A stretch of DNA of 64,000 nucleotides, taken from positions 124,001 to 188,000 of IMG/VR virus record IMGVR_UViG_3300017991_000048. The stretch is one strand, 5' to 3'. Below, one piece after another: positions 7,042 to 37,772 of this stretch (the stretch's first letter is position 1; each line of letters starts with the position of its first letter). The notes beneath the pieces were generated by a model. It was not told the origin of the DNA. It made no database searches and saw only the letters and a program-made list of their open reading frames with translations. Both the position numbers and the translations under genes were made by a program.

Positions 7042-8460
7042 GTGAAAATCGATAATGTCAGATTCTGGTTTGCGTGTAACAGTAGCAGCGTCCATAGCGT
7101 TGTAAGGTATCCGACCGACTCCGAAATAACCGACGACCTCTGTGGCGGGGCTGACTATTTTGGGTGGGAGCCCTTTGTAGCCGCCTCAAACAGAACCAAA
7201 AGAAGCTACCTCAAAACTTTACTCTACGGTCGTATGTTACACCTGAGGGAAACCCTGGAGACAGCAACGGAGACTGCTCGTTTGGTTGCTGATCAGGTAT
7301 TCCCGGACACACCCACCGGACACATTGATCACCAGTCAGTGCCTTTGATTCCAAGAAAGTATGGCTCTCACGAGCCATGTTATGAATTTCTCCGCGAGAT
7401 GACCGACTACATTCTACAGGATGGAGTGGTCATTCATGGCGGTAATGATAACAATGACGGAGAGGATGACCCGGCATACCCCAAGGAATCTAATGTTGAC
7501 TGGTACAAAAACATCCCTCTCGACCAAACCGGTGCTAACTGGGTGTGTAGAAAAGAAGGGGATTGGTGGGTTTTGTTCAACCGAATGAGCGGCACCAAGG
7601 TCACCCTGTCCTTTAAAGATGATGCAGCGCCCCGCACAAGGGCTTCGGTCCCTGAACTGGTAGACCTCAAGATAACAGACTTCTGTCCATACGGGTGTGC
7701 TTGGTGTTACCAGGGAAGCACCCACCAGGGCCGTCATGCTGAGGGCACCCGTGAGTGGTTGAATCTACTTGCAGTTGCACAGGTGTTTGAAGTTGCTATT
7801 GGTGGTGGGGAGCCGACCTTGCACCCAGAGTTCAAGAATTTGTTAAGGACGGCACCCTCTGGTTTGAGTTTGAACTTCTCTACACGGAACCTCGATTGGG
7901 TTTGTTATAACGCCGATCTTATCCGAGAGAAGTGTGGGGGTTTTGCTGTCTCAATTAGTGGAAACTATGCTGAAACTGAGCGCGTCATCAAAGCCCTGGA
8001 TAAAGCGAACCTGCTAGAGAAGGCCACACTGCAATATGTAATGAGCACGGCAAGTGATTGGGACTTTGAGGAAACTGTCAAAACCTGCCACGACTCGCGG
8101 GTTCGCCTCACACTGCTTGGCTACAAGACCACAGGGCGTGGTAAAGCCGCAACAAACCGCTTTGAGACAGCCACTCAAGATCGAGACGGGTGGGTAGAAG
8201 TGATCAGTGACCACAGTTACTATATGGCCATTGACACAGCTTTAGCTGCACGGACACCAGAGGACGTGTTCGATGAAACTTTCTTGAGACGAACTGAAGG
8301 CACTCATAGCATGTATATAGATGCGGTGGCCTCAAAAGCCAGCATCAGCAGTTATTCAGACGCTGATATGGTATCTGTTGAGCCAAGCATGGAATCTTTG
8401 ATCAAGGTGTTCAATGGGTTTGGTGAAGCAGAGACTCTTTGGCGGCATCTAAAAGAGTAA
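7042..8460 (+). CDS. radical SAM protein with N-terminal NSSS domain
   Basis: ITDFCPYGCAWCYQ (CxxxCxxC), IGGGEPTLHP, N-terminal RFWFACNSSSVHS; C-terminal TLWRHL. Confidence 0.85.
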   Translation: MKIDNVRFWFACNSSSVHSVVRYPTDSEITDDLCGGADYFGWEPFVAASNRTKRSYLKTLLYGRMLHLRETLETATETARLVADQVFPDTPTGHIDHQSVPLIPRKYGSHEPCYEFLREMTDYILQDGVVIHGGNDNNDGEDDPAYPKESNVDWYKNIPLDQTGANWVCRKEGDWWVLFNRMSGTKVTLSFKDDAAPRTRASVPELVDLKITDFCPYGCAWCYQGSTHQGRHAEGTREWLNLLAVAQVFEVAIGGGEPTLHPEFKNLLRTAPSGLSLNFSTRNLDWVCYNADLIREKCGGFAVSISGNYAETERVIKALDKANLLEKATLQYVMSTASDWDFEETVKTCHDSRVRLTLLGYKTTGRGKAATNRFETATQDRDGWVEVISDHSYYMAIDTALAARTPEDVFDETFLRRTEGTHSMYIDAVASKASISSYSDADMVSVEPSMESLIKVFNGFGEAETLWRHLKE

Positions 8461-8471
8461 TGGAGATTAAA

Positions 8472-8638
8472 ATGAGTAGATAAGAGAGCTTCGGGGTCTT
8501 TGCGAAGCGTCTCGGATGACTATAAACAACGTTCACGATTACAAGTTGTCTCCGATGGATCGGGATCACATCAGCACAGCGCTCGCTCGTGCGGTAAAAA
8601 TTGCAGACAAGCTTTTGGAGGGTGAAGATGAAAAATGA
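8472..8638 (+). pseudogene. small ORF apparently broken by a 1-nt frameshift (or 40-aa ORF 8516..8638)
   Basis: GGAG SD + ATG AGT AGA TAA at 8472; the shifted frame continues IRELRGLCEASRMTINNVHDYKLSPMDRDHISTALARAVKIADKLLEGEDEK*. Confidence 0.3.
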
Positions 8639-8671
8639 TACGGCAACCAAGACCGACGTGAAGGCGATCCG

Positions 8672-9376: not shown

Positions 9377-9991
9377 ATGACTTTTCCAAAAATGAGTGAA
9401 GTCCTGGCTGAGGGAACGAAAGGTGATGTGACAATAGAGCACTTCACGGTTTCTGATGAAGAATCTCAATTCACAGCTTTGCGTGGCGGAATGGGATACG
9501 TACCCGCTGGAGATTATGTCAGGCTACTCATTTCTGGTGCTGTAGTGATGAGTGACACTCGAATGGAACAGTTCACCAACTATGACGTGCTGCGTGAGTC
9601 CAAGGGGCGTGTGTTCATTGCCGGGTTGGGCCTGGGCATGATCTGTCACGGCATCGCGGCTAAACCTGAAGTGTCAAAGATTACTGTTCTCGAACTGAAT
9701 GAGAACGTAATCGATCTTGTGGCCCCGTCCCTGCCTGAGAAGGTAGAGGTCAATCAAGGGGATATTTTTGAGTACAAGCCCGGTCGGTGGGAGCAGTTTG
9801 ACACCATTTACTTTGATGTCTGGAATGATATCTGTACCGACAACCTTCCTCAAATGGGTAAGCTGTTTCGACGTTTTCGGAAACATTTGGCACCTAATGG
9901 TTGGATGGACTGCTGGTGCCGAGATTACCTGAAAAAACAACGTCGTAAGGAGCTACAGCAAGAACGTGAGTTGTCTGCTTGGAGACTGTGA
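9377..9991 (+). CDS. class I SAM-dependent methyltransferase / spermidine-synthase-like fold
   Basis: RVFIAGLGLG (motif I), VLELNENVIDLV, GDIF, FDTIYFDVW. Confidence 0.75.
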   Translation: MTFPKMSEVLAEGTKGDVTIEHFTVSDEESQFTALRGGMGYVPAGDYVRLLISGAVVMSDTRMEQFTNYDVLRESKGRVFIAGLGLGMICHGIAAKPEVSKITVLELNENVIDLVAPSLPEKVEVNQGDIFEYKPGRWEQFDTIYFDVWNDICTDNLPQMGKLFRRFRKHLAPNGWMDCWCRDYLKKQRRKELQQERELSAWRL

Positions 9992-9998
9992 TAAGTAA

Positions 9999-10442
9999 AT
10001 GACACAAGGAGTACCGCCATTAGAAGAAGTCTTGCAGCAAGACTTCGAGCAGCAAGAGGACAAGGATCTTTGGGATCACCTCGTAAATAGACACGACGGG
10101 TTTCTTTATCGGTACGAGGAAAGGCGCTATGTGGACCAGCCCATAGAAATCGAGCTACGGAAACTACGAGTGCTCAAACAAACGGCCAAAGGGATCTGGA
10201 TTCAAGATTGGTATCACAAAAAAGGAAAAAGGTTTGTACTGTTCAATTCTCGGAAGAAGTACGCTTGTCTAACAGAAGAGGAAGCGCTTGAGTCTTTCAA
10301 AGCACGTAAAAGCAGGCAGGTCAAAATATTACGAAAGCAGTTGAACTGTGCTGAGGTCGCATTAAGTATAGCCAAAGGCGAAACACCTAATGGACAGGCG
10401 TTCGCATTACCGCCCGTCTGTTTCCGGGAGGAAGAAACATGA
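9999..10442 (+). CDS. hypothetical protein
   Basis: AAGGAG-rich operon context; contains DLWDHL; ATGA overlap with next gene. Confidence 0.55.
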   Translation: MTQGVPPLEEVLQQDFEQQEDKDLWDHLVNRHDGFLYRYEERRYVDQPIEIELRKLRVLKQTAKGIWIQDWYHKKGKRFVLFNSRKKYACLTEEEALESFKARKSRQVKILRKQLNCAEVALSIAKGETPNGQAFALPPVCFREEET

Positions 10443-11578
10443 ATCAAAAGATACTGTTTGTAGGCGGCACATTCGATAAGACCGGCGGGAAGCCTTCCAA
10501 GATTGTTAGACAACTTGCATATGGCTTATACGAAACCGTCAATGGCGGGTCAGTCGCAGAACTGCGTGATCTGGTCAAGTCCTTTGATGACTATACACCC
10601 CCGACCTGCCACTGCCGTGCTCTCCGTCCTACTTATGATGCTATAATTTGGATGCCTAATATTTCCAACGATGAGGAAAAGCTGTTACCAAAGATTAAAA
10701 AGAAGTCGCCGCATACTGTTCTCATAAGTTCAAAGAGGAACACGCAAAACAAGTACTCCTATGTTGAGCTTGTTGACCGGGCGCTCAAATCCAAGTCACA
10801 GTTGCTTATAGAGATTTCCGACTCGGACAGTGGCTTGCGTTTCAGACTCGTCGATCCCTTGGGCAATGTGTCCAGGATCTTTTTCAAAGGGGAGCTACAA
10901 GATTTCAGAGACATGTTATATGAGAAGATTCAATTCTTATTAAGGATGAAACGAATTGGATCAGGGAATGATGCGGGATACTCTCATATTGATCCACCAG
11001 ACAAACCCCAGATCGATAGTAAGTTTTTGGAAGCCATCACGGGCTACGCTGACAAGTTCCATGATCTTATCCACGGAGAGAATGAAAACCCAAGGTTCAT
11101 GGGCAACGTTTCATTCCGTTGCACCAAAGGCGGTTTTCCTTCACAACGGAACGGAGATGCAATCTACGTCAGCAGGAGAAATGTTGACAAACGAAGCTTA
11201 GACGCTGAGAGCTTTGTAGCGGTAGCCCCCCATAAGATATGTGAGCGGTGGGGAGGTATTTTGTATTGGGGTGAGCATAAACCCTCTGTGGATACGCCGA
11301 TTCAGATTCAATTGTACGACGCTTTCCCCAAGATCAATTATATGCTTCACGCTCACGTTTATTACAAGGGTGCCACCATGACAAATCGATACGTGCCTTG
11401 TGGAGATACCCGTGAGGTGGCTGAAGTCGTGAACGTAGTGCCCAACCCCAAGGTTCGAGCGAAGTTTGCCGTAAACCTCAAAGGCCACGGGTGCTTGATC
11501 GCCAGTGCCAAGGTCAAGGATTTGCTCAACCTGGAAGATAAGTTCTACGCCAGACCGACACCGGAAGAGACATTATAA
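10439..11578 (+). CDS. class II aldolase/adducin-domain protein
   Basis: GNVSFR, KPSVDTPIQ, LHAH, NLKGHG metal-binding pattern. Confidence 0.75.
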   Translation: MNQKILFVGGTFDKTGGKPSKIVRQLAYGLYETVNGGSVAELRDLVKSFDDYTPPTCHCRALRPTYDAIIWMPNISNDEEKLLPKIKKKSPHTVLISSKRNTQNKYSYVELVDRALKSKSQLLIEISDSDSGLRFRLVDPLGNVSRIFFKGELQDFRDMLYEKIQFLLRMKRIGSGNDAGYSHIDPPDKPQIDSKFLEAITGYADKFHDLIHGENENPRFMGNVSFRCTKGGFPSQRNGDAIYVSRRNVDKRSLDAESFVAVAPHKICERWGGILYWGEHKPSVDTPIQIQLYDAFPKINYMLHAHVYYKGATMTNRYVPCGDTREVAEVVNVVPNPKVRAKFAVNLKGHGCLIASAKVKDLLNLEDKFYARPTPEETL

Positions 11579-14764: not shown

Positions 14765-15021
14765 TGACCCCGGAAGAAATCAAAGAAACGTTGGCCGAGT
14801 GTAATCCTGATGCTCTTCTGGCTGACGGATTCGACGATGCCTTGATAGGAATCGCCCAGAGGTGCGGACAGCCAGTTCTGGCTGTCTATGACATCGACAA
14901 GTGTGTTGACGTGCTAATGAAGCGTGATGCAATGACCTATGAAGAGGCGCGGGAATACCTGGAGTTCAATTCAATCGGGGCGTGGGTGGGGGAGCACACT
15001 CCCATATGGTTGGAGCGGTGA
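14761..15021 (+). CDS. conserved phage hypothetical protein
   Basis: ADGFDDALIG...VYD..K...MTYEEAREYLEFN..GAWVGEHTP. Confidence 0.7.
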   Translation: MMTPEEIKETLAECNPDALLADGFDDALIGIAQRCGQPVLAVYDIDKCVDVLMKRDAMTYEEAREYLEFNSIGAWVGEHTPIWLER

Positions 15022-15983
15022 AAGAGCGAACTTCACCCTTTCTCAAGTGGGTTGGGGGTAAGAGCCAACTGCTCCATGTTCTCTCCCGTCTCATAGCCAA
15101 AAAGAGCCTGACCTACTACGAGCCGTTCTTAGGCGGAGGGGCTATATTCTTCCATTTTGCCGACCGGCGTCGGTTCCGGAAAGCCGTTCTCAATGACAGC
15201 AACCCGGAGCTTATTAACTGTTATGAGGTCGTAAAAGACCGTCTCCCAGAGCTTCTCCAAAGGTTGGACACTTTCAAACAGGATTCCGATTGGAACACCA
15301 AACCTTACTTTGAACACATCCGGGCTCAGAGACTTTCTGATCCCGTGGAACAGGCTGCTCGTACTGTCTATTTGAACCGTACTTGCTTCAATGGCCTTTA
15401 TCGGACCAACCGGGCTGGTGAGTTCAACGCTCCTTTTGGGAAATACGACAACCCTCAACTTTACAATCTGGTAAACATTACAGCCTGTTCAGAGACTTTA
15501 CAACGCTTTGCCACATTACGGGTTGGAGACTTCTCTGAAGCTGTGGCAGACGCTCAAGCCGGTGACTTGGTTTACTTTGACCCTCCGTATGTTCCGTTGT
15601 CTAAGACCTCTAGCTTTACCTCGTACACAGGGGAGTTTGGGGTAGATCAACAAATATCCTTGGCCCAACTCTTCCAGGAACTGTTCGATCGCGGTGTTAT
15701 TGTCGTCCAGTCAAACTCCGATACCCCGTTCGTGCGGGAATTGTACGAGGCTTTTGACCTACATGTAGTAGAAGCCAAAAGGAGTGTGAACTCCAAAGGC
15801 GACAAGAGGGGAGAGGTCGATGAGCTTGTAATAGTAGGGCAGCCAAAGGATCTAAAAATCGACGTGGCTGCCGTATCATACGGCCCTGACGTTTTCCCTT
15901 TGGAGTGTGCTGACTGCGGGACTCTATACAGTTCCGCAGAAATTGTTTGTGTTGAATGTGGTTCGGCAGACGTTAAGGAATGA
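15018..15983 (+). CDS. dam: DNA adenine methyltransferase (Dam/D12 class) with C-terminal Zn ribbon
   Basis: FLKWVGGK, YYEPFLGGG, LNDSN, CFNGLYR.N, YFDPPY, SNS; terminal CADC/CVEC; GTGA overlap start. Confidence 0.92.
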   Translation: MKERTSPFLKWVGGKSQLLHVLSRLIAKKSLTYYEPFLGGGAIFFHFADRRRFRKAVLNDSNPELINCYEVVKDRLPELLQRLDTFKQDSDWNTKPYFEHIRAQRLSDPVEQAARTVYLNRTCFNGLYRTNRAGEFNAPFGKYDNPQLYNLVNITACSETLQRFATLRVGDFSEAVADAQAGDLVYFDPPYVPLSKTSSFTSYTGEFGVDQQISLAQLFQELFDRGVIVVQSNSDTPFVRELYEAFDLHVVEAKRSVNSKGDKRGEVDELVIVGQPKDLKIDVAAVSYGPDVFPLECADCGTLYSSAEIVCVECGSADVKE

Positions 15984-17699
15984 TCACGGAAACATCACTT
16001 CACACTCAAGCAACAGATCGGCACCTTTGTTGAAAGACTTAACCTTGGCTTTGAACCCGGACACTCCCCTGGTGTTCTTCTTTATGGAAGCTTCCATGAC
16101 CTTTTCAACAGCTTGACGGGCTTTACGAGCAGCGGTGGCGTCCTCAGAAGCTCCTTCGATGGTCAGATAAACAATGGGACCGGAGCCTGCTTTTGCGTCA
16201 GAGGAATAGCCCTCAACTTCAACTTTCTCAATTTCTTTTGCAAGGCTACGCATCCACTTTGCAAGCCACCCTTTATCTTTTTCCATTTCCGCCATTTGTG
16301 CCTCCAAATACCGATTGACAATCTGTTGGGCTGCGGTCTTTTTAGCCGCTGCTTTCGCTTGCCACCTCTGATAGTACTGCTTTTGTTGTGCCCACGGCAA
16401 CGACCGAACCTTGACCTGGGGAAACTGTTTCCGAGACTTTGGGTTGGGGTTCGGAACCATGCTATCCCCAACTTCACGAAGGAACCGCATCCGAGTTTTG
16501 TCTTTGTCAGGTTCTTTCTTCTTCGGCTCTTTCTCCGGTTCTGCCTTTTCCTTCGGCTTCTCTTTCTTTTTCTTGGGAGTCGCTCCTGTAGCTCTTTGGT
16601 GCGCCTCTTCATTCATGCTCTTCACAGCCGTGGCAATATCTCCCTCTTCCGGTTTCTTGGGCAAGCCGCTTAATGCATGACCGTATGAGGTAGGCTTATT
16701 TAGTTTATAAGGGGAAATAGCGTAAAGGATCTTATTGATCTCTTTTGTCGCTTTCTCTTTTTCATCTTCGGACATACCCGCGAGCTTGTTCATCAGGTCT
16801 TTGGCCTTGGCCCGAAGCTTACTGGCTTCTTCGGGCTTGTCGTGCGGCGGTCCTTTACGATAGTGGACGAAGTTATCGGGGGATGCTGATTGAATATCCT
16901 TCAGGGCCTCTTCATTTTTCTCGTACCAGTTAGAAATATCAAACTGGTCCACCATCCGTTTTCCCCGGACCTTGCCACGGGAAAGGTTAGATAGCTCCGT
17001 GTCAGCCTGTTCCGGGTGAAGGAAAATGACTGTAACCTCGTACCCGTTAGATTTGGCGTTATCGATCTGGCCTTTGAAGTCTTGAGCGTCAATATCTTCA
17101 CCAGCCGAGTCAACAATCAGTAAATCCTTGACCTTTTCTATCTTACTGCTAACCGACTCTTCAAACCGGTGACGGGCCTCATCTTTATAACGTTCTTTTG
17201 GTTTGCCCGTCTCTTCGTTCTTTTCTTTAGGATCATCATGCCAGCCACGCATGGACACATAGAAATCTTTGTTGGTTTTTCCGAAAAACTCATCGAAGTC
17301 ATCAGGGAAATCATCATGCCCTACGACTTTACTTAACTCTATACGCTCTCCGTCCTTGGTTTCATACCAGTGATCTGCCAACGCTTTCTTGAAAGTATCC
17401 TTGCCTTTTTCGTGGGCTTCTTTGAGAGCGTCAAAGTGTTTCTGAGCCTCTTCAAACTGGATAGCTCGCAAATGGTTATCTGACTCATCCTGCTCAGGAC
17501 GTTCTGGGATGTCCTCTTCTGTCAGTAAAGGGTTGCCTTCATCATCCACGAGCATCTGTGGCAACTTCCATCCGAACTTGGGTGGCGGCTCCCCTAAAAA
17601 GAAGCCTTTACCCGCTGCCGGTGGTCCCATCATTACCACCATTCGCTTCTTATCGCTTTTGGCGTTTAGATAACGAGCTATGATTCGCTGCCTATTCAT
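15984..17699 (-). CDS. P-loop kinase (zeta-toxin/AAA_33-like) multidomain protein with two RY tags
   Basis: VVMMGPPAAGKG, LIVDSAG, GYEVTVIFL, lid NLSRGKVRGKR; tags RIIARYLNA (N-terminal) and QIVNRYLEA (internal). Confidence 0.65.
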   Translation of the reverse strand: MNRQRIIARYLNAKSDKKRMVVMMGPPAAGKGFFLGEPPPKFGWKLPQMLVDDEGNPLLTEEDIPERPEQDESDNHLRAIQFEEAQKHFDALKEAHEKGKDTFKKALADHWYETKDGERIELSKVVGHDDFPDDFDEFFGKTNKDFYVSMRGWHDDPKEKNEETGKPKERYKDEARHRFEESVSSKIEKVKDLLIVDSAGEDIDAQDFKGQIDNAKSNGYEVTVIFLHPEQADTELSNLSRGKVRGKRMVDQFDISNWYEKNEEALKDIQSASPDNFVHYRKGPPHDKPEEASKLRAKAKDLMNKLAGMSEDEKEKATKEINKILYAISPYKLNKPTSYGHALSGLPKKPEEGDIATAVKSMNEEAHQRATGATPKKKKEKPKEKAEPEKEPKKKEPDKDKTRMRFLREVGDSMVPNPNPKSRKQFPQVKVRSLPWAQQKQYYQRWQAKAAAKKTAAQQIVNRYLEAQMAEMEKDKGWLAKWMRSLAKEIEKVEVEGYSSDAKAGSGPIVYLTIEGASEDATAARKARQAVEKVMEASIKKNTRGVSGFKAKVKSFNKGADLLLECEVMFP

Positions 17700-18351
17700 A
17701 TTGCTCCTTAAGTGCCTTTGCTCTCACCGCTCTATTAAGAACCTTACGAGTATCGTTGATGAGCTTATCAGGGTAATCAGGATCATCACCCATTTCAGCT
17801 TTCAGATCCTTGCCAAAAACTTCAACCTTCTTGGCAAGTGAACGAAGATGATCTCTTAAAGTGTTCTTCAATATTGGCTTTCCTTCGTCCCATGCCTTGA
17901 TTTGGGCTATTGTCCAGTCAATACCAAAAAACCCAGTCGTACCTTTGTCGAAATAGTGCCCCAAGTTAAATGATGTGAGCAAGGGGATAACCCGCTCTTC
18001 AAACTTTTCTAGTAGTTGACGAGTGTCTACTAATACAGCGGGGAGAGGTCCCATGTTAGCCTCTCCTTCGATCTTCAGTGTTGCCTTTACTTTAACAGAC
18101 CCGTCTCTATCCATGGTAAGAGACCCCTCTCCTGCAACTTTGCGCCCGTCTGTTGTGGCCATCTCAAGGGTAAAAGACCCTTTAGATTTCGGCTTGCACT
18201 TAATACTCCCTTTGGGTTCAGTGTTGTGCTTGTTCAATCTGAGCCACATGAGAATTTCATTACGAAAAGGCAAAAATTCATCGAATTCTATGCTGTCCTC
18301 TGTCGGCAGACCAGCGAAGCGTGTGACAACTCGATTTGTAATATCAGGCAT
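17692..18351 (-). CDS. hypothetical protein with N-terminal RVVTRF tag
   Basis: MPDITNRVVTRFAG; GAGGTG SD. Confidence 0.6.
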   Translation of the reverse strand: MPDITNRVVTRFAGLPTEDSIEFDEFLPFRNEILMWLRLNKHNTEPKGSIKCKPKSKGSFTLEMATTDGRKVAGEGSLTMDRDGSVKVKATLKIEGEANMGPLPAVLVDTRQLLEKFEERVIPLLTSFNLGHYFDKGTTGFFGIDWTIAQIKAWDEGKPILKNTLRDHLRSLAKKVEVFGKDLKAEMGDDPDYPDKLINDTRKVLNRAVRAKALKEQYE

Positions 18352-18354
18352 CGT

Positions 18355-21222
18355 TCACCTCTTTACATGAAACTTATCAATAATTGTTCCGTCTTTTAGG
18401 TAGCTACTTTCGAGTCCGGGAACAAGATATTGGGATTTTAATGTGCTGGCTTCATGCCCGACAGCTTTGGCTGTGTCCTCAAGAGCCTCTTTGAACTCAG
18501 CCTTGAGTTGGGTCTGACGTTCTTTACGGTCTGTGGGCAACTGTCCAGTTCTTACTTTCTTGAGCCTCTCTCGCATTTCATGGTTCGCGTGGAACCCCCT
18601 GATATCCTTGGCTGTGATTCCGAAAGGCTTCAGGTAAGCATTGACTTTCTCCGGTGTCACCCGACCGCTGTCCCACTGGAGAAGTCCCGCGCCGTTGTCT
18701 TTCATGGCATCATAAGCGTCCCGTAAGGCTTTTCGTATACTCTTGTCCGTGATTTTCTTCTCTTGTTTGACTCCTGACTTGCCCACGTACTTGATAAAGG
18801 CTGCGTCAGGCTGGAAACTCACGTGTTTACGTTTCCAGCCTGTGACGCCAAAATGACCGTCCTTGGCTGATAAGTCATTGCCCACTCGCTCATAGGTGTG
18901 ATCCATGAGAGCCACAGCGAGTGCTGTTCTTGCTATTTCCGGGTCTGAGGATCTAAGGTCTTTCTTAACTTTAGACCGGAGTTTCTTTATGGCTTGACCA
19001 AGCTTTTGGATACGTTCGGCTTTCTTACGGTTTCGATCGGCTACCTGACGTTCGGAGTAAACATATACCGTTGTCTTGCCCCCATCTTGAGAGGGAACCT
19101 GCTTCTTCTCTTTGTACTTGGCGGTCAGGTAGCGTTGAACAATTTGAGCAGCTATCAAAGTACGTCCTTTCAGACGGGCAAAAAGACGGTCCATCACAGG
19201 GCGAATCTCTGTATCAAAGCGTTCTTCTTCAACATAAGTGTCCGCGTCATAGCTCATTTGGGTAAGCCAGGGGTTAGAGATCCCGGCATCGATTAGCTTA
19301 TTATAAACGTACTGTTCGCACATACGCGCCCAGACTTCGGCGGTACTATGGTAATAGGTTAGCCTTCTATCATCGCCACCCATCATATTTTTGTACTGCT
19401 TTTGGACCTCTTCGTTTAATTCAGGTGGCAGTTCAGACCGGTACGCTGCCTCGTACATGGCATTATAGTAAGGGTGGTCCTTGGGTAAATCAAAATACTC
19501 CTTCCCCGTTAAGCTTTTGATCGCTTTTGGCATCGCCAAATCATAAGGTGAGCCGAGCTTGTCCTCCCACCTTTTGTAATCAGGCGTGGCTAATACAGCG
19601 TCAATAAATTCTACAAGCTCAGGAAATTCACTCTCATGTAGATAGTCTCGACGATACGCTAATGCCTCGCCTTCTCCAAGACGGCTCAACGGGACACCGG
19701 TCAGACCAAAGAGGTCACCAGGGCCACCTTTGATTCCCAACTCTTCTCGTTTCTTGGCTTGTTCAGGGTCTACTTGCTTTTGGATACGGTAAGCCAGTAA
19801 GTCTTCTAAGTAATGAGATAGCTCGTGGGCCAACAACCCCTCATAGTCATCACCAAATGTGACTCTGGGTTGCCACTCGCTTTTGTTATCCCAAACAAAA
19901 TAATGTGCCCTTGTCATGCCGCCTGAAAACTTATTGAATCGAAAGGCTAATTTTCTGTTATGTTTGCCGCAGAACCCTTTACCGAATACAGCTTCTAAAT
20001 CGGTTACGGCTCTAGACACGCGGCCAAGTATCTCTTTACGTTCCTCTTCTGTATAATCATGATCAAACTCTATATCGCCTGTGTCGTGCTTTACTTGAAA
20101 TTCCTCTTCAGTAACAGGTTCATATTGAAGCGGGACAAGAGGCTTCCCTTCTCGGACGGCTTTGTTTTTGGACGCTTGATCAATAATGGTATCAATGTCC
20201 TGGACCATCTCTCTCCCCACTATTTTACGTTCGACCGCTTCTTTAATGATCCGTTGCATTGTGGGAAAAGTTTTGGCTTTGCGTATAGAAGTAAGGAGTT
20301 TTTTCGTCTCACGGGGAAGTGTTTTGCGTGTTTTGTCAATACCTTCCCACCGCCCCACCTTGTTTATATATTCTTCGATCTTGAGGCGTGTAAATTCTGT
20401 GGGGCCGTCTGAATCAAGTTTAGCCTCACTGCGGAGTACCTTTTCAAGGGGAACTTCGTCCTTTCTTCTAATAATATTTAGGTTCGCACCGGCAATGTTT
20501 TGTACTTTTTGAAGACGTCTCGTGACATCTTTATAAGCTTCGAGACGTTCCTCTGGGTCGCTATCCTTATGTTTTTCCCAAACTTGATCTTGTTCAGCCT
20601 CAAGTTTATCAGCCAACTCTCTAAGGTTCTTTTTCTTGTCGGCTGGCATTTCGAACCAAGCGCCTGGATTGGCTGTCTCAGAGAGCGGGGCGTTTGGGGT
20701 CGGTAGCTTGATAACTTTACGGAATAAGGTTCGGAGTTTCGGAGGAATTGTTTTAACCTGGACAATAGTCTCCAGGAACTCTTTGACATCCCGCCCTTCT
20801 GTGCTGTCGAGGTTCCGGGCTATGTAGATGACTCTGAACAACTTGGGGTCGTCAATATCACGATAAGAGAGGTTTCTCAGCCCTCTGAAAGCAAGAGCCA
20901 ACTGCCGCAGAGCCTGTTGTTCCTGTCTTACATTCAAAGCGCCAATGGCTCGTAATGGTCTGATCGCAGGTTTTACAGCAGGGCCAAACCGCCCCTCTTC
21001 AAAAGCGTCTGCGAGGTCTAGACAGGCTTTGACAAAATCTGCATGAAAAGTTTTACGCAGTTGCAAATACTTTTTGATCTCGCTCTCATCGAAGAAAGGG
21101 TTGGTGACAATATAGTTTTGGGCCAACAGCATCGCGATACCGGCTGTTACGATTTCCAGGGTTTCTTCAGAATAAGCCGCTGTTAGATACCGGCCTACTA
21201 CGTTTTCAGAACGTGAAAGCAC
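18355..21222 (-). CDS. LPD1-like (HExxH) domain fused to DNA topoisomerase IB
   Basis: AHELSHYLED and YYHSTAEVWARMCEQY (LPD1-like). C-terminal ~250 aa carry topo IB catalytic residues: ERVGN, YVGKSG, VNAYLK..ITAKDIR, VGH, SQYL. Confidence 0.8.
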   Translation of the reverse strand: MLSRSENVVGRYLTAAYSEETLEIVTAGIAMLLAQNYIVTNPFFDESEIKKYLQLRKTFHADFVKACLDLADAFEEGRFGPAVKPAIRPLRAIGALNVRQEQQALRQLALAFRGLRNLSYRDIDDPKLFRVIYIARNLDSTEGRDVKEFLETIVQVKTIPPKLRTLFRKVIKLPTPNAPLSETANPGAWFEMPADKKKNLRELADKLEAEQDQVWEKHKDSDPEERLEAYKDVTRRLQKVQNIAGANLNIIRRKDEVPLEKVLRSEAKLDSDGPTEFTRLKIEEYINKVGRWEGIDKTRKTLPRETKKLLTSIRKAKTFPTMQRIIKEAVERKIVGREMVQDIDTIIDQASKNKAVREGKPLVPLQYEPVTEEEFQVKHDTGDIEFDHDYTEEERKEILGRVSRAVTDLEAVFGKGFCGKHNRKLAFRFNKFSGGMTRAHYFVWDNKSEWQPRVTFGDDYEGLLAHELSHYLEDLLAYRIQKQVDPEQAKKREELGIKGGPGDLFGLTGVPLSRLGEGEALAYRRDYLHESEFPELVEFIDAVLATPDYKRWEDKLGSPYDLAMPKAIKSLTGKEYFDLPKDHPYYNAMYEAAYRSELPPELNEEVQKQYKNMMGGDDRRLTYYHSTAEVWARMCEQYVYNKLIDAGISNPWLTQMSYDADTYVEEERFDTEIRPVMDRLFARLKGRTLIAAQIVQRYLTAKYKEKKQVPSQDGGKTTVYVYSERQVADRNRKKAERIQKLGQAIKKLRSKVKKDLRSSDPEIARTALAVALMDHTYERVGNDLSAKDGHFGVTGWKRKHVSFQPDAAFIKYVGKSGVKQEKKITDKSIRKALRDAYDAMKDNGAGLLQWDSGRVTPEKVNAYLKPFGITAKDIRGFHANHEMRERLKKVRTGQLPTDRKERQTQLKAEFKEALEDTAKAVGHEASTLKSQYLVPGLESSYLKDGTIIDKFHVKR

Positions 21223-21225: not shown

Positions 21226-21501
21226 TTATTTCTTCTGCTCTTCCTTCTCGCGCCTTTTAGTTTCTTGCACATCCTCTGGAGACATTTTGCGGATTGTGTA
21301 AAGCCCCATGGTCCGATTCTTTTTACGTCCTTTGGGCACAGGCTCAATTTCTATGTAAGGGATACCCCTCTTGTCCAAGTATACCCTGACCACTTTGGCT
21401 CGTTTGTTCTTAAACTTGCCAAAAAGGACGTAATCCCCTGGTTTAAAATGTGCCGTCAGAAACCGGGCAGCTACCCGGTCAGATGAGACTTTTCGGTCCA
21501 T
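21226..21501 (-). CDS. small SH3/KOW-like protein with N-terminal RVAARF tag
   Basis: SSDRVAARFLTA followed by FKPGDYVLFGKFKNKRAKVVRV. Confidence 0.6.
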   Translation of the reverse strand: MDRKVSSDRVAARFLTAHFKPGDYVLFGKFKNKRAKVVRVYLDKRGIPYIEIEPVPKGRKKNRTMGLYTIRKMSPEDVQETKRREKEEQKK

Positions 21502-28021: not shown

Positions 28022-28480
28022 CTATCTGAGAGGAAACTTCTTAGGTTTACGGACTTTCCTGAAACGGGTCTGCCGAACTTTGGGCCTGTACCCTCTTGAA
28101 ATTGGCTCCACGGTCATATCGAACTTCTTAGCAACCTGGGCCAACTCCGCCAAAGCCGTCCTCTCTGCTGTATCAACAGAGCCACCCTCGTCTACCGGGA
28201 CTTGCAGGTCCACCCGTGTTTCTGTGCGTAGGCCCTTTTCCTCATCAATCCGTGTCAGAAGACCCGATGATTGATGTCCGGTTACTTTCAAAAATATATC
28301 GTGGATCTCTCCGTCGTCGCCTATCACTGGCACAATGGTGCGATTGATAGCCCGAATAACATCGATGTTGAAAGGAATGAGCTTGCGCCCTTCCGCAAAT
28401 AAGACGCTCATCCTATCTACAGCATAGCTGAAGCCAGCAGTTTTGAGATAACGAGAAACAATCTGTTCTGCTGTTTTCAT
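28022..28480 (-). CDS. hypothetical protein with N-terminal QIVSRY tag
   Basis: GAGGA SD before ATG 28480: MKTAEQIVSRYLKTA. Confidence 0.6.
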   Translation of the reverse strand: MKTAEQIVSRYLKTAGFSYAVDRMSVLFAEGRKLIPFNIDVIRAINRTIVPVIGDDGEIHDIFLKVTGHQSSGLLTRIDEEKGLRTETRVDLQVPVDEGGSVDTAERTALAELAQVAKKFDMTVEPISRGYRPKVRQTRFRKVRKPKKFPLR

Positions 28481-30735: not shown

Positions 30736-31155
30736 TTACCCGAATATAGCTGTGATGTCGTACTTGTCTAAAGGATCGTCCACCGAACCGGCACCCGCCG
30801 CTGTGATCGTCCCGTAGATGGTGTCAGGACGTCCTCTTTGGTTAGTAAAAGGTATCTCAAATGTCCAGGTTTTGCTTGTGGGCATCTGTTGGCGATGATA
30901 GGGACCAGGGGCGTATTCCCGTGGGATTATATACTCTTCGTCGGTTAGCGTGAAAGGGATACCCTCTTTACGAAGTACATCAAAAATGCGATTAATCCCT
31001 ACCCAACTCTGGTCACTGTAAATGCCACGTGTGTACCTTTGGGTGAGCTTGTAAAGGTAATTGGTAGCCTTTTGTTTCCGCATCCCATCTAATGGGTTTG
31101 GAAGCTCCAGAGCAGCTTTATAACGAGTTACGATTCGGTCAGTTCTTGTGCCCAT
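30736..31155 (-). CDS. hypothetical protein with N-terminal RIVTRY tag
   Basis: MGTRTDRIVTRYKAA from ATG 31155. Confidence 0.6.
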   Translation of the reverse strand: MGTRTDRIVTRYKAALELPNPLDGMRKQKATNYLYKLTQRYTRGIYSDQSWVGINRIFDVLRKEGIPFTLTDEEYIIPREYAPGPYHRQQMPTSKTWTFEIPFTNQRGRPDTIYGTITAAGAGSVDDPLDKYDITAIFG

Positions 31156-31178
31156 GCCTTTATGAAAACACAAAAACT

Positions 31179-32432
31179 CTAGGCATTGCCCTCTGTCGCT
31201 CTCAGTACCAGAGCAGAGCCAGGATTTGTCACCGCTTCTGGTGTAATCTGGATAGTAGAAATATCTGAATTGTCTGGAGCTTCATAGGTGTACGGCTTCA
31301 GTACCTCTTCCATGATGGAACGTAGCGCCCTGGCACCAGTAAGCCGTTCCTTTGCCTTCTTTGCTATGGCCCGTAACGCTTCTGGGTCAAACTGTAGGTC
31401 GATACCATCAAGAGAAAACAGAGCCCGGAACTGCTTACAAATGGCATTCTTGGGCTCAATCAAGATCTGAACAAGCTCATCTTCACTTAGCTCATAAGTG
31501 GACGTAAGAATCGGGAGTCTGCCTACAATCTCAGGAATCAGCCCAAATTCCTCCACGTCCTCAGATGTAATGTTGGAGTAAATGTCCGTCTTATCCCGCT
31601 TGCTAGGTGCGGTTCGGCCAAAGCCCATACCAGTTGACTTATTGAGCCGCCCGTCAACTATTTCCTCAATACCAGCAAACGAACCGGCTGCTATAAACAG
31701 GATGTTTGTCGTATCGATTATGTCTGAGGAGGTCAGACCTGAGACAGCCTTTGTTCCCATGCCCCGTGGAACTGGAACCTTGTGCCCTTCTATGAGCTTG
31801 AGCAGCGCCTGTTGCACACCTTCGCCTGTTACATCCCGATACCCGGAAGGGCTGCGACCGGACTTACGTGCCAGCTTGTCGAACTCATCTAAGAAGATAA
31901 TGCCCCACTCGGCCCGTTCTATATTCTGTTGAGCATCTGCGAACAAACCCTGGAGTATAGCTTCTGGATCATCTCCAACATACCCGGCCTGAGTCAGTCT
32001 GTTACAATCAGCGACATAAAAAGGTACATCTAACATTCTGGCGATTGCTTTAGCAATCAAGGTCTTGCCAGAACCTGAAGGACCGGGGAGTAAGATGTTA
32101 GATTTCTCGATCTCAACTCTCTCGCCCTCTAACATTACACCCCCGCTTTTGCTCACCTCTCTACGCCTGTAATGTTTGTAAATAGCTATGGCCATATCTC
32201 TCTTGGCGTTCTCTTGGCCTATAACGATTTCGTTCAGTAAATCTGTGATTTCACGAGGTTTTTTGAGCGGGACTTCTGTCGCTTCCTGCTTCCGTTCAGT
32301 CTCTTCGATAGCTCTGGAAGTCTCTTCAATACAGCCATTACAGATATGAGTGCCGTCTTTAGCCCCTACAAGGTGCTTGACTTCATTACGGGGTCTTCCG
32401 CAAAAGTTACACTTTCGTGGTTCTTTAGACAT
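31179..32432 (-). CDS. clpX: ATP-dependent Clp protease ATP-binding subunit ClpX
   Basis: C4 Zn finger (CNFC..ICNGC), KSNILLPGPSGSGKT, GYVG pore loop, IIFLDEFDK, RDVTGEGVQQALLK, MGF loop, GARALR. Confidence 0.95.
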   Translation of the reverse strand: MSKEPRKCNFCGRPRNEVKHLVGAKDGTHICNGCIEETSRAIEETERKQEATEVPLKKPREITDLLNEIVIGQENAKRDMAIAIYKHYRRREVSKSGGVMLEGERVEIEKSNILLPGPSGSGKTLIAKAIARMLDVPFYVADCNRLTQAGYVGDDPEAILQGLFADAQQNIERAEWGIIFLDEFDKLARKSGRSPSGYRDVTGEGVQQALLKLIEGHKVPVPRGMGTKAVSGLTSSDIIDTTNILFIAAGSFAGIEEIVDGRLNKSTGMGFGRTAPSKRDKTDIYSNITSEDVEEFGLIPEIVGRLPILTSTYELSEDELVQILIEPKNAICKQFRALFSLDGIDLQFDPEALRAIAKKAKERLTGARALRSIMEEVLKPYTYEAPDNSDISTIQITPEAVTNPGSALVLRATEGNA

Positions 32433-35690: not shown

Positions 35691-37253
35691 TCATCCTACA
35701 GAGAATTTACGGTCTGACCCATTTGGATCAGCGGCGTATCTGGCTCGTACTCCGTCATCGGCATCAGGATCAAATCCAACCCAATCAAGAGTTTCCTTGA
35801 TTTCATCCTGCATGGTATGAACGATGCGAGGCTTACGTTCCAGTGCTTTCAGGAAAATATCTTCCCCTACGCAATCCAAACCGTCTTCAAAGCTCTCTGT
35901 CATAGACGACTTCAGGCACTGCTCTATCTCCCGGCCCACCATACTTTTGGCAGCTTCCGACAGTTGAGCGAGATTATAATCGGCGGGTTTTTGCCCTCGT
36001 TTCTTCAGATGGATCTTGATAATGTCAATCCTATCTTCAACAGAAGGCAGATCAAAGAACCAACGCTCATCGGCTCTGTTCACCAACTCAACGGGTAACG
36101 TCTTCAGAGAATTAGCGGTCATCGCCAAACAAACAGGTGCTTTGGTTTCCTGCAACCATGTGGACAGGATACCGATCATGCGACTTGTGGTTCCAGCGTC
36201 GGTATGAGACGATGAGTGACCGCCTGCAAAGCTCTTTTCGGCTTCATCAGTCCACACCACACAAGGTGCCACGGACTCAATGATCTTGAGAGCATGATAG
36301 ACGTTGGACTCAGAATCCCCGACTCCTGACTGGCGTAAACTGCCCAGGTCGAACTGAATCAAGGGTAGACCCCAAGCATTACCCAGAGCCTTGATAGACA
36401 ACGATTTACCGGTGCCCCAAACACCAACCGCCAAAACACCACGAGGTGGCTCCAGACCGAACTCACGTCCTTCTGGGCTCCAGGCGGCAGCGGTACGCTG
36501 TGCCCAGGTTTTGAAACGTCCCGCCCCACCGATTTGGTCAAATGTGAAATCTGCGGTATCGATGTATCGGACAAGGGTGGTTTTTTTAAGTTGTTTGAAA
36601 CGGTACTGGGTGAGTACCTTCGGATCGGCGTGTCCTTGGGTTTTCTTGTAGGTTTGAATGAGGGCCGACTGGACTTCAAACGAGGTCAGACCTCTAAAGT
36701 GCGACTCCGGGTTTTCCGGAGCGTCCATTTTCAGGTTTGAACAGGTTTCGTTCACGACCTCTTCGATTTCTTCGACGGTAAGGCCGGTGTCATGGACAAC
36801 TTCAGTGTAACGGGCCAGCTTCTGTGGGACATACTGCATACTGCCCACGCAGATCAGAACCTTAACGGTTCCCACATCATTGTGGACTTGGTGCAGGATA
36901 TTCAGTATACGCCTTTGAACATGGGCATCTTTTAACCACCGCTCCGGGTCAGTGATTACATAAAATTGCCGCTCTTTCGGCGTTTGATCCTTGTAGATAG
37001 TGATCAGGGCATCATGGATACCCTGAGTCTTACCGTCCGTCGAATGCCCCTTGGACTTCCAATCTGATATAAGGTCGGAAAGTGGCACAAGCCCAAAAGC
37101 AGCATTGTAGACTTTGACAAAGGTTACTTTATCCTTCATCGCAGCCTGAAGCTGGACCAGAAAACGATCCTCTTCTTCAGTCACAAAGTAAATCAACCTT
37201 GTGACTGCCCGGAGGTGAAATGCAAGTTCAGGAAACATTATGCCATATGCCAC
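35691..37253 (-). CDS. Ycf46-like AAA+ ATPase
   Basis: N-terminal TEEEDR domain, IGGAGRFKTW, PPRGVLAVGVWGTGKS, VGDSE, APCVVWTDEAEK, TWLQE, MTAN, R.DE.WFFDLP. Confidence 0.88.
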   Translation of the reverse strand: MAYGIMFPELAFHLRAVTRLIYFVTEEEDRFLVQLQAAMKDKVTFVKVYNAAFGLVPLSDLISDWKSKGHSTDGKTQGIHDALITIYKDQTPKERQFYVITDPERWLKDAHVQRRILNILHQVHNDVGTVKVLICVGSMQYVPQKLARYTEVVHDTGLTVEEIEEVVNETCSNLKMDAPENPESHFRGLTSFEVQSALIQTYKKTQGHADPKVLTQYRFKQLKKTTLVRYIDTADFTFDQIGGAGRFKTWAQRTAAAWSPEGREFGLEPPRGVLAVGVWGTGKSLSIKALGNAWGLPLIQFDLGSLRQSGVGDSESNVYHALKIIESVAPCVVWTDEAEKSFAGGHSSSHTDAGTTSRMIGILSTWLQETKAPVCLAMTANSLKTLPVELVNRADERWFFDLPSVEDRIDIIKIHLKKRGQKPADYNLAQLSEAAKSMVGREIEQCLKSSMTESFEDGLDCVGEDIFLKALERKPRIVHTMQDEIKETLDWVGFDPDADDGVRARYAADPNGSDRKFSVG

Positions 37254-37564
37254 ATCAGAACGATGCTACCCTCTTCGTCGGTGGTTTCTTCATCGATCAC
37301 TGTGCCGGTCTTCAGGAACTCTGCCTTGACCTTGGCCGAACTGTAGTGCTGACGCAGAACGCCGAACCTATCCTGCTTGTGTCCATAGTCACTGTCGCCC
37401 TCGATGTTTCCGGTGCTCAGATCCAGGGAAGCGTTTTTGAAGTCACCGGAACTCATGTAAATCATGTTTCCCCGAACTTCGTGCATAATCCCCGCCTGAT
37501 TCAGAGCCTGGATTGCCAGATCCTTGTCAGTGATATCTGTGGTTTGGTGTATTCGCCGTGACAT
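37238..37564 (-). CDS. DUF1257 / Ycf35-like protein
   Basis: MS..I..TTDITDKDLAIQAL..., LRQHY, G.V.DEET.EEGSIVL; canonical neighbour of Ycf46-type AAA. Confidence 0.65.
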   Translation of the reverse strand: MSRRIHQTTDITDKDLAIQALNQAGIMHEVRGNMIYMSSGDFKNASLDLSTGNIEGDSDYGHKQDRFGVLRQHYSSAKVKAEFLKTGTVIDEETTDEEGSIVLMWHMA

Positions 37565-37582
37565 TAGTAGTTGTCCCTTTCT

Positions 37583-37756
37583 CTAGTTAAGAGTAGTTTC
37601 GTGAACGTCGTCGCAATCAGGACCGGTGACCTCTTCATCAACGGTCTTCCCAACATTGGATGTTACCTTATGAACATCCTTACAGTCTTGCCCTTCACGG
37701 TCAAGAACCTCTGTTACAATCTTTCCATCCTTCTTAATAATGGTTTTACCTTTCAT
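37583..37756 (-). CDS. DUF2997-like small protein (57 aa; absent from ORF track)
   Basis: AGGAGG SD; MKGKTIIKKDGKIVTEVLDREGQDCKDVHKVTSNVGKTVDEEVTGPDCDDVHETTLN; I..DG.I..EV....G..C pattern. Confidence 0.7.
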   Translation of the reverse strand: MKGKTIIKKDGKIVTEVLDREGQDCKDVHKVTSNVGKTVDEEVTGPDCDDVHETTLN

Positions 37757-37772
37757 GGTAACCTCCTGTCTG

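Follow-up and report, generated by a model that had tools for sequence, protein, structure and literature searches.

A recurrent short peptide delimits a zincin-like/LPD1 module and a topoisomerase IB module in a protein of a huge phage

The type IB topoisomerase of poxviruses is carried inside the virion. It is a small, ATP-independent enzyme which, like bacterial counterparts, joins a DNA-binding beta-sheet domain at the N-terminus, some 80 aa long in the poxviral proteins, to a catalytic fold with an R-K-R-H-Y pentad; the structures used here for comparison are those of the variola virus (PDB: 2h7f) and Deinococcus radiodurans (PDB: 2f4q) enzymes. Short terminal peptides borne by unrelated proteins are known from the T4 capsid-targeting sequence (internal proteins, Alt), from the cargo-loading peptides of encapsulins and from the encapsulation peptides of bacterial microcompartments, the last of which are also found N-terminally, C-terminally or between domains. 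Polyvalent proteins, described from phages and conjugative elements (Iyer et al. 2017), carry several unrelated enzyme domains per polypeptide, extensively shuffled between relatives, and their repertoire includes Zeta-like kinase, NUDIX, GNAT, metallopeptidase and LPD1 domains (PMC5512222). It has been proposed that the metallopeptidase domains autoprocess the proteins that contain them (PMC5512222). That work does not list topoisomerase IB as one of its domains, 'topoisomerase' occurring in the references only, nor does it describe a conserved delimiting peptide ('linker' has 0 occurrences).

We analysed a window of 64,000 nucleotides (positions 124,001 to 188,000 of virus record IMGVR_UViG_3300017991_000048) from a phage genome of 398 kb. 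It contains an open reading frame for a 955-residue protein, P0001, whose features are collected in the table; a stop codon two codons upstream of the GTG start rules out a longer reading. The gene lies at 142-145 kb of the genome, ~17 kb from the genes for DNA polymerase A, DnaB and an SNF2 helicase and ~170 kb from the head module (305-320 kb), and among its neighbours are replication genes and genes that encode AAA+ proteins and a DnaJ-domain protein. No PHROGs family was matched by P0001. The sequence-only reading had recognised an LPD1-like domain fused to an intact topoisomerase IB, and Pfam matches both families in the one protein. An AlphaFold2 (AF2) model of the whole chain has a pLDDT of 90.6, with low confidence confined to two short peptides, hereafter tags, which are both predicted as free helices.

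Coordinates of P0001, its parts and other tagged or related genes in the window (aa, residue positions or length)
Feature	Position	Strand	Remarks
P0001 ORF, 955 aa, GTG start	18355..21222	(-)	tag, helical, zincin-like/LPD1, tag, topoisomerase IB
N-terminal tag NVVGRYLTA, aa 7-15	21178..21204	(-)	predicted free short helix in AF2 model, pLDDT <50
All-helical N-terminal domain, aa 16-370	20113..21177	(-)	conserved in N-module family
Zincin-like domain, aa 371-686, with Pfam LPD1 inside	19165..20112	(-)	VIA, AFDB and Atlas matches
HELSH (HExxH), aa 466-470	19813..19827	(-)	invariant in 35 homologues
Pfam LPD1 region, aa 620-685	19168..19365	(-)	invariant E629, W631, A632, R633, E636
Junction tag IAAQIVQRYLTA, aa 690-701	19120..19155	(-)	pLDDT <50 at aa 697-701
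Topoisomerase IB module, aa 702-955	18358..19119	(-)	catalytic R779, K815, R875, H923, Y932
Upstream gene, 91 aa, KOW-like	21226..21501	(-)	N-terminal tag RVAARFLTA, 21451-21474
Downstream gene, 219 aa	17692..18351	(-)	N-terminal tag-like RVVTRFAGL, 18307-18330
Zeta-toxin-like P-loop kinase, 571 aa	15984..17699	(-)	N-terminal tag 17661-17684; internal tag 16299-16322
ORF, 164 aa	28022..28516	(-)	N-terminal tag QIVSRYLKT, 28439-28462
ORF, 145 aa, directly downstream of clpX	30736..31173	(-)	tag RIVTRYKAA
Phage ClpX, full-length	31179..32432	(-)	zinc-binding N-domain, GYVG pore loop, MGF loop; candidate receptor
ORF, 429 aa	2129..3418	(+)	N-terminal tag VVVSRFLEA, 2171-2194

The C-terminal module of ~255 aa is, judged by its residues, a catalytically complete type IB topoisomerase. 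Pfam Topoisom_I (PF01028) matches aa 729-930 (E 6e-26, 91.6 bits, cut-off 23.7), and a six-frame search with the same profile returned 96.6 bits for the topoisomerase IB. The fold, too, is that expected from the earlier assignment of this domain, since the model matches variola topoisomerase IB 2h7f (Foldseek E 8e-9, TM by target 0.61), with further matches to 3m4a, 2f4q and human topoisomerase I. All of the catalytic positions picked out beforehand are present: R779 (ERVGN), K815 (VGKSG), R875 (KDIRG), H923 (VGHEA) and Y932 (SQYL) align in the same order with variola R130/K167/R223/H265/Y274, and they are 98-100% conserved across 58-59 homologues. The module shares the catalytic fold and pentad with the poxvirus and bacterial enzymes and would likewise be small and independent of ATP, but most of their N-terminal DNA-binding domain is absent from it. 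Alignments to 2h7f start at residue 67 and those to 2f4q at residue 65, and only one beta-hairpin (aa 705-721) lies ahead of the P0001 catalytic domain. It further differs from those enzymes in being bordered by tags and joined to other domains, with an identity of only ~20-23%.

The N-terminal ~690 residues (the N-module), in which a helical domain precedes an HExxH zincin-like domain with LPD1 as its C-terminal part, are probably a zinc metalloprotease. Both of the motifs noted at the outset, HExxH and EVWAR, were borne out, as HELSH and as AEVWAR at aa 628-633, the latter being, like the former, invariant in 35 homologues. The LPD1 match exceeds the Pfam cut-off (E 1.4e-7, 31.9 bits, cut-off 27), Atlas neighbours are 76-97% LPD1, and AFDB clusters titled 'Large polyvalent protein-associated domain' match with E values of 2e-5 to 1e-3. 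VIA matches to M34-type zinc peptidases cover model residues ~355-679, and the Z scores against zincin structures over 147-180 residues are 8.8 (1yqy), 7.7 (6fpc), 7.3 (3dl1), 7.2 (9g0j) and 6.5 (8t41), values which lie where perhaps only a shared arrangement is meant. The best of them belong to the catalytic domain of anthrax lethal factor (1yqy) and to Pro-Pro endopeptidases (6fpc, 9g0j). P0001 has in common with these zincins an HExxH motif followed by an invariant Glu-containing helix (AEVWARMCEQY), in which the invariant E629 and E636 are candidate third zinc ligands; it differs from them in a ~160-aa insertion between HExxH and the downstream Glu, and no match to them is seen at the sequence level. 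None of the Pfam peptidase families was matched in P0001, a Foldseek search of the N-module against the PDB gave no match with E below 0.05, and a profile of it run against PDB sequences found only formin INF2 (E 0.04), a weak and probably chance hit. The likeness to M34 enzymes, as modelled, is one of fold only and does not imply a toxin function. P0001 does suggest that LPD1 may form part of a zincin-like protease.

The peptide at the junction between the two modules is present as IAAQIVQRYLTA, and its position agrees with the earlier reading except at one edge, which had been put at about 19120-19157 and now lies at 19120-19155. The earlier view that this peptide repeats the N-terminal tag exactly did not survive alignment: RSENVVGRYLTA and IAAQIVQRYLTA agree at 6/12 residues, namely one V and RYLTA. 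These five shared residues are encoded by CGG TAT CTA ACA GCG in one tag and CGC TAC CTG ACC GCC in the other, so that the codons differ at all five positions and the tag is conserved at the level of protein and not of DNA. Synonymous variation at every position likewise rules out a DNA repeat or recombination site. Across the family the tag is a basic amphipathic peptide of ~12 residues with the consensus (L)xxR-[VI]-[AV]-x-R-[YF]-L-x-A. It is also carried by unrelated proteins, which excludes its being a part of the topoisomerase fold, and a Tat-type signal was rejected because no hydrophobic stretch follows the tag and because the tag also occupies C-terminal and junctional sites.

Comparison with relatives indicates that P0001 is a fusion of two modules which related phages encode as separate genes. 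A search proposed in the sequence-only reading turned up the tag at the start of 104 of 117 stand-alone topoisomerase IB genes; one such protein, of 269 aa and 75% identical (P0122), begins MRERVLYRYLTAKYKEKK. The N-module is also found alone, with the tag at its end. The junction tag of P0001 matches the tag that ends stand-alone N-modules, merged with the one that starts stand-alone topoisomerases; its TAKYKEKK resembles their AARYKEKK. Where a topoisomerase domain is present, the tag stands directly ahead of it in 180/206 cases. The order of the modules is reversed in seven proteins (P0007, P0009, P0010, P0013, P0014, P0017 and P0018), and elsewhere the P0001 modules are fused to GNAT, NUDIX, HD, PAP2, carbonic anhydrase plus RNA ligase, or DUF5662 domains. 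A KOW-like domain is fused to the topoisomerase in P0123, and has its tag at the C-terminus in L024 and at the N-terminus in the gene upstream of P0001. In relatives the tag is found at either terminus and where domains meet; of 239 homologues, 155 carry it N-terminally (8 expected) and 90 C-terminally (5 expected). By these sequence comparisons the fusion in P0001 is one among many interchangeable arrangements, and the tag supplies a concrete rule for module boundaries.

In these respects P0001 resembles the polyvalent proteins, with several unrelated enzyme domains in one extensively shuffled polypeptide, LPD1 in both, and fusion partners that overlap their repertoire in Zeta-like kinase, NUDIX, GNAT and metallopeptidase. 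A place beside the portal and terminase genes, expected of such proteins, is seen for the topoisomerase module in two relatives; in the present genome the gene is far from the head genes, and, unlike in polyvalent proteins, a MuF domain was not found here. With P0001, topoisomerase IB joins the set of modules known from polyvalent proteins. We read P0001 as a modular cargo protein of the polyvalent type whose delimiting tag has not been described before, and give this reading, together with the role proposed for the tag below, an even chance.

The same arrangement could instead be that of a true polyprotein, as first suggested, in which the junction tag is a cleavage site and a free topoisomerase is released; the zincin domain of P0001 itself could make the cut, or else the head maturation protease that the genome encodes. 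The module boundaries that fall at tags, with the modules occurring as separate genes elsewhere, would suit such cleavage, as would an HExxH domain in cis, a junction that is flexible and exposed in the AF2 model, and the autoprocessing proposed for polyvalent proteins. Yet a tag that forms the very end of a single-domain protein can release nothing, and with such C-terminal tags in 90 of the 239 homologues a docking peptide fits better than a mere cleavage site. Furthermore, AF2 docked neither tag into the zincin cleft, and no conserved P1/P1' signature was found beyond the tag. A single one of 30 related large contigs has the N-module, whereas tags are widespread, which counts against the polyprotein and rules out the N-module as a general tag-processing peptidase. 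We regard processing of this kind as unlikely, if still a serious competitor.

The tag is far from confined to P0001. Searching with the pattern [IVL][IVA]xR[YF](L)x(A), and counting enrichment on the core [IVL][IVA]xR[YF] within the first 30 aa, we found the core in 23 of the 567 ORFs that the genome contains, where 200 shuffles gave 2.8 +/- 1.8 (maximum 9), an N-terminal excess that is far above chance. The further carriers include a Zeta-like kinase, a CCA-adding/HD enzyme, DUF5662 and a GNAT-like protein, whereas DNA polymerase A, DnaB and SNF2 have no tag. In the 571-aa Zeta-toxin-like kinase the internal tag precedes a C-terminal domain of ~100 aa, making this a second two-module tagged protein within the gene row of P0001. 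The presence of the tag on so many phage proteins points to a common system that sorts or docks enzymes of the phage. Huge phages have hundreds of genes of unknown purpose, of which the tag would make a testable subset; here it comprises at least 23 proteins, mostly conflict- or take-over-type enzymes.

Capsid loading is the most likely role for such a docking tag, and we hold the explanation, taken as a whole, to be evenly poised. The tag would dock enzymes to a common receptor and so have them loaded into the capsid, from which they would enter the host together with the DNA. In the cell the topoisomerase could, needing no ATP, relax a genome of great length as it enters or is transcribed, and the putative protease could act upon host or phage targets; cleavage at the junction tag would be possible and not required. 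Virion delivery gains contextual support from two relatives (G025 and LR745208) in which the topoisomerase module lies within a protein encoded between the portal and the head protease. In G029 a tag ends the post-portal protein, and in G000 an 899-aa post-portal protein has an internal tag, small tagged ORFs flank the terminase gene and are also found close to that of the major capsid protein. G025 also has an ORF of 2493 aa. When the 292-aa major capsid protein was modelled in complex with residues 1-30 of the tagged 91-aa protein the score was 0.00, which speaks neither for nor against binding. The tag resembles the T4, encapsulin and microcompartment peptides in being short, amphipathic, unstructured relative to its cargo and present at the termini of unrelated proteins. 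Its sequence is unrelated to theirs, its carriers are far more numerous (at least 23 in a genome), its positions include C-termini and junctions, and packaging here is a prediction by analogy. Counting against capsid loading are the CCA-adding enzyme and some other tagged enzymes, which are not obvious virion cargo, and the position of the P0001 gene far from the head module and near replication genes, together with its status as the only recognisable topoisomerase gene of the phage.

These last observations are what would be expected if P0001 were an ordinary intracellular swivelase used in replicating and transcribing the 398-kb genome, its LPD1 fusion incidental and its tags serving an intracellular complex or a chaperone and not the virion. 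Neither type IA nor type IIA topoisomerases were detectable in the genome, and being the sole recognisable topoisomerase of the phage fits a housekeeping role, as do the neighbouring replication, DnaJ-domain and AAA+ genes. Among related large contigs 22/30 have the topoisomerase IB module, as do 8/10 of the complete ones, and topoisomerase I-type enzymes are known in jumbo phages (PMC7824862). Against a purely intracellular role stand the lack of tags on DNA polymerase A, DnaB and SNF2, the two lineages that place the topoisomerase module inside the post-portal head-gene slot, and fusion partners that are typical of conflict or effector domains. We consider this explanation improbable.

A docking tag calls for a receptor, and a full-length phage ClpX, with its zinc finger, GYVG and MGF (IGF-like) loops, is encoded among the tagged genes. 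The tag might then be a tether to the zinc-binding N-domain of ClpX, of the phage or of the host, comparable to the XB peptide of SspB, with its carriers handed over to ClpX(P) to be removed at a set time, remodelled or unfolded. The XB peptide, RGGRPALRVVK (PMC3983244), shares with the family-wide tag (L)ALRV[AV]A[RK]Y an LRV[VA] core and the basic residue after it, and binds irrespective of its position in the polypeptide (PMC12373786), paralleling the N-terminal, C-terminal and internal sites of the tag. Many proteins carry two tags, like the two XB tails of the bivalent SspB dimer, and a tagged ORF stands right downstream of clpX here as well as in L055 and L057. The tag index is 13.3 in ClpX-positive relatives (control 4.9) against 6.3 in ClpX-negative ones (control 4.1), but this correlation tracks phylogeny. 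Tags occur without a phage ClpX in G025, which is complete, and in LR745208, while Bacillus phage G, Atu_ph07 and L058 have ClpX and no excess of tags; since across relatives tags neither require a phage ClpX nor always accompany one, the phage ClpX was ruled out as an obligatory receptor. Moreover, the resemblance to XB is limited to 4-5 residues, the additional invariant R-[YF]-L of the tag, with its second Arg and aromatic residue, has no counterpart in XB, and ClpP was not found in the phage genome. A ClpX tether thus appears very improbable, although it would explain why the largest phages frequently have a ClpX of their own.

Returning to capsid loading, a broader form of the proposal makes the tag an address peptide that is universal in a huge-phage clade, works at any position and loads dozens of enzymes into the capsid or onto a single receptor; this we put forward tentatively, as possible though falling short of probable. 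Such an address would allow modules to be fused, split or reordered while their destination is kept. If so, it would constitute a natural plug-and-play cargo system, whose carriers include topoisomerase, protease, kinase, tRNA-repair and nucleotide-hydrolysing enzymes. The proteins that uncultured huge phages inject could then be read straight from sequence, and the peptide could be reused for loading foreign proteins into phage heads. As a capsid-loading signal the tag would define the broadest such phage system known and a practical tool for protein packaging.

The motif appears to be undescribed in the searchable literature, where RVAARY and RVAARF have no occurrences, and the passages searched of a 2026 jumbo-phage review do not mention such a tag. 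The nearest isolate, Tunturi_5 (large terminase 28% identical), shows no tag excess (3 vs control 5), and the topoisomerases of Xanthomonas and Erwinia jumbo phages (31% identical) are free of tags at the N-terminus and around the topoisomerase domain. The tag-poor relatives G027 and G029 still keep one or two tagged proteins.

The window covers positions 124001–188000 of a 398,071-bp virus record whose direct terminal repeats indicate that it derives from a complete huge phage. We prefer the GTG start for P0001 (955 aa), one codon past the stop of the preceding gene, because the next ATG (codon 31) would cut off a conserved N-terminal peptide. The sequence-only reading, an LPD1-like domain joined to a topoisomerase IB, had correctly named the parts of a real and unusual protein: Pfam places LPD1 at aa 620–685 (31.9 bits; cut-off 27) and Topoisom_I at aa 729–930 (E 6e-26), and PHROGs gave no match. 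The AlphaFold2 model, built from 84 sequences, has a mean pLDDT of 90.6. P0001 shares its architecture with the polyvalent proteins; what is new is the topoisomerase IB module and the delimiting tag, a short basic peptide with the core [IVL][IVA]xR[YF]. This tag is a weightier discovery than the fusion protein itself: it is a conserved, position-independent peptide, lying at termini and at junctions, and it marks the bounds of enzyme modules that are shuffled within one clade of huge phages.

Residues 67–287 of variola topoisomerase IB (2h7f) and 65–308 of Deinococcus TopIB (2f4q) can be aligned to the last 266 aa, and the modelled domain resembles 2h7f (E 8e-9). Alignment to these solved structures bears out the catalytic positions claimed earlier (R779, K815, R875, H923 and Y932), each 98–100% conserved among 58–59 homologues. 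Only a beta-hairpin (aa 705–721) precedes the catalytic domain, so that most of the DNA-binding domain with which poxviral and bacterial enzymes begin is missing.

The N-terminal 690 residues (the N-module) form a separate family in which H466-E-x-x-H470, D474, H421 and the block E629-x-W-A-R-x-x-E636-Q-Y are invariant across 35 homologues. A Foldseek search of the PDB with a separate model of the N-module (pLDDT 86.7) gave nothing significant. In an exhaustive structural comparison, zinc peptidases took four of the top five ranks over model residues ~355–679, with Z scores of 8.8 for the anthrax lethal factor catalytic domain, 7.7 and 7.2 for Pro-Pro endopeptidases and 7.3 for a putative metal-dependent hydrolase; aminopeptidase N (6.5) came at rank 34. 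Matches in AlphaFold DB were clusters named 'Large polyvalent protein-associated domain-containing protein' (E 2e-5 to 1e-3), and the Atlas neighbours are LPD1 clusters. From these moderate fold scores we read Pfam LPD1 as the C-terminal part of a zincin-like domain and the N-module as probably a metalloprotease, its likeness to lethal factor being confined to the fold. The N-module profile also met the FH2 region of formin INF2 (AGxNLxIIxxE...L.KvL..E.K) at E 0.04, below significance and probably by chance (aa ~207–305, window ~20308–20604).

The junction tag had been described as an exact repeat of the N-terminal one, which does not hold: RYLTA and one valine are common (6 of 12 positions), and all five RYLTA codons differ. 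Such synonymous variation is found in tag codons throughout and points to selection on the peptide. Of the 567 ORFs in the genome, 23 have the core in their first 30 residues (small HMM plus regular expression), against a residue-shuffle expectation of 2.8 ± 1.8 (maximum 9); further copies are internal in three other proteins and C-terminal in one. With its hydrophobic residues spaced at i, i+4 and i+8 and both arginines turned to a different face, the tag is predicted to be a basic amphipathic helix, and the two P0001 tags, drawn as free helices, are the sole segments of the full-length model with pLDDT <50. Among the tagged proteins, an identity could be given to a Zeta-toxin-like kinase, a 91-aa KOW-like protein, a CCA-adding/poly(A) polymerase-HD enzyme (L011, elsewhere in this genome; genome 248288–249712), DUF5662 and a GNAT-like protein. 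P0001 stands in a row of four closely packed tagged genes (91, 955, 219 and 571 aa), the last encoding the kinase, a second two-module tagged protein in which a long lysine/glutamate-rich stretch lies between the N-terminal tag and an internal tag, with a ~100-aa C-terminal domain after the latter. RNA ligase and kinase modules are fused to the topoisomerase in relatives and, with the CCA-adding enzyme, hint at tRNA-repair functions within the tagged set. An untagged block of replication and chaperone genes at 35691–47732 (minus strand) encodes an AAA ATPase, DNA polymerase A, a DnaB-like helicase, an SNF2 helicase and a DnaJ-domain protein.

Positions of the principal features (window coordinates unless a contig or genome is named)
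Feature	Position	Strand	Remark
Dam-type methyltransferase	14982-15983	plus	
Zeta-toxin-like P-loop kinase, 571 aa	15984-17699	minus	N-terminal tag; internal tag 16299-16322
P0001 ORF, 955 aa	18355..21222	minus	
N-terminal tag NVVGRYLTA		minus	P0001 aa 7-15
Junction tag IAAQIVQRYLTA	19120-19155	minus	P0001 aa 690-701
Complete ClpX	31179-32432	minus	zinc-binding domain (zinc finger), GYVG loop, MGF loop
Major capsid protein	L021:13834-14712; genome 305834-306712		
MxYSYDHR-type ORFs	L021:6380-6922, 7548-8012, 8022-8651, 9699-10463, 10493-10828, 18226-18471, 18480-18758		outside window
TnpB / Cas12f1-like_TNB genes	L024:11404-12810, L002:1517-2800, L026:11446-12885		related phages
Enlarged ClpX ORFs	G006:C1:280067-282370, G016:C1:215744-218050, L057:8573-10894		relatives

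Of 239 homologues, 155 are tagged at the N-terminus, where 8 were expected, and 90 at the C-terminus, where 5 were expected. Stand-alone N-modules (690–760 aa, on contigs up to 570 kb) end in the tag, for example ...LKERTLLARIVARFSESKGS. Stand-alone topoisomerases that begin with it, as the sequence-only reading envisaged, are common (104 of 117; 260–300 aa) and include the 75% identical P0122, which opens with MRERVLYRYLTAKYKEKK; within longer proteins the tag lies ahead of the topoisomerase domain in 76 of 89 cases. At the junction, the closest full-length relatives have a tandem pair of tags (RERLADRFLLVARVAARYKEKK), so the lone tag there in P0001 looks like a merger of two, the one that ends the N-module and the one that opens the following module. 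Seven proteins show the reversed order (tag-topoisomerase...N-module-tag), and other fusion partners of the topoisomerase are GNAT, NUDIX, HD, PAP2, carbonic anhydrase plus RNA ligase, DUF5661 and DUF5662. Elsewhere the partner is the KOW-like protein, here the upstream neighbour, which is tagged at its N-terminus in the present phage and at its C-terminus in the syntenic contig L024, where four successive genes open with M[RK]E[RH][VI]LQRYL. This position independence on one domain is the strongest argument for a docking peptide rather than a cleavage site alone, and we give cleavage at the tag lower odds than the overall model. The zincin was rejected as a general tag-processing enzyme, since among 30 relatives the N-module occurs in one and the topoisomerase in 22. 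Tunturi_5, the nearest isolate, has no tag excess. In three related phages, TnpB / Cas12f1-like_TNB (IS605-type) genes lie a few kb from the topoisomerase gene.

A free tagged topoisomerase could conceivably also arise by internal initiation at L689. The K-G-R-T-L codons before the junction tag (19156–19173, minus strand) read AAAGGACGTACTTTG, with a Shine-Dalgarno-like AAGGA six bases ahead of the in-frame TTG just before the tag; LKGR is also conserved in stand-alone N-modules, so the AAGGA may be coincidence.

The best-supported reading is that tagged proteins would be loaded into the capsid and then co-injected; to the overall model of P0001 and its tag we assign an even chance. The head module (major capsid protein, head maturation protease, portal, large terminase) lies at genome 305–320 kb, distant from P0001. 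The slot after the portal usually encodes head-internal, injected multidomain proteins. In the 485-kb related phage LR745208, a topoisomerase fused to a HAD-like domain follows the portal and a 134-aa ORF; in contig G025, a 2493-aa protein whose gene lies between those of the portal and the head protease contains the topoisomerase as residues 1438–1692; and the post-portal protein of contig G029 ends ...LIQRVVDRYLSH. The present genome has an internal tag in its 899-aa post-portal protein and small tagged ORFs flanking the terminase gene. These gene positions lend contextual support to loading of the topoisomerase module into the virion, short of proof for P0001 itself, and phage polyvalent proteins have been tied to portal-terminase systems (Iyer et al., PMC5512222). 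A housekeeping topoisomerase is a live rival to virion delivery, and possible because searches of the phage genome detected no topoisomerase of type IA or IIA. The major capsid protein is 84–85% identical across the present phage, LR745208, G027 and G029, whereas terminase and portal are only 46–53% identical and G+C ranges from 31% to 55%; conservation of the capsid protein is thus unusually strong.

The window also encodes a complete ClpX (E 2e-104 against E. coli ClpX), and no ClpP was found in the phage genome. The tag might instead tether proteins to the zinc-binding domain of ClpX, of phage or host, in the manner of the SspB XB peptide (RGGRPALRVVK; PMC3983244), which is active at any polypeptide position (PMC12373786) and which the family-wide tag ...ALRV[AV]A[RK]Y resembles. 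The next ORF downstream of clpX bears a tag in this phage, as it does in two relatives. In 30 large terminase-related contigs, ClpX occurs in 16, all of the closer clade, and the tag index of these is 13.3 (control 4.9), against 6.3 (control 4.1) in the others. However, tags occur in G025 and LR745208, which lack ClpX, and ClpX occurs in Bacillus phage G, Agrobacterium phage Atu_ph07 and contig L058, which lack tags. We hold the tether as a minority hypothesis, though a live rival to the overall model. The ClpX homologue of Bacillus phage G directly follows a ClpP-like gene whose annotation is head maturation protease. An enlarged ClpX ORF of ~775 aa is present in three relatives, an insertion of ~350 aa, which looks like an intein or similar, splitting the match at ~residue 120 near Walker A.

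A different N-terminal motif (MxYSYDHR / MTYDRRY / MDHNRWK) opens ~12 small ORFs at genome 298–311 kb, mostly inside or adjoining the head-gene module, and may represent another class of address peptide.
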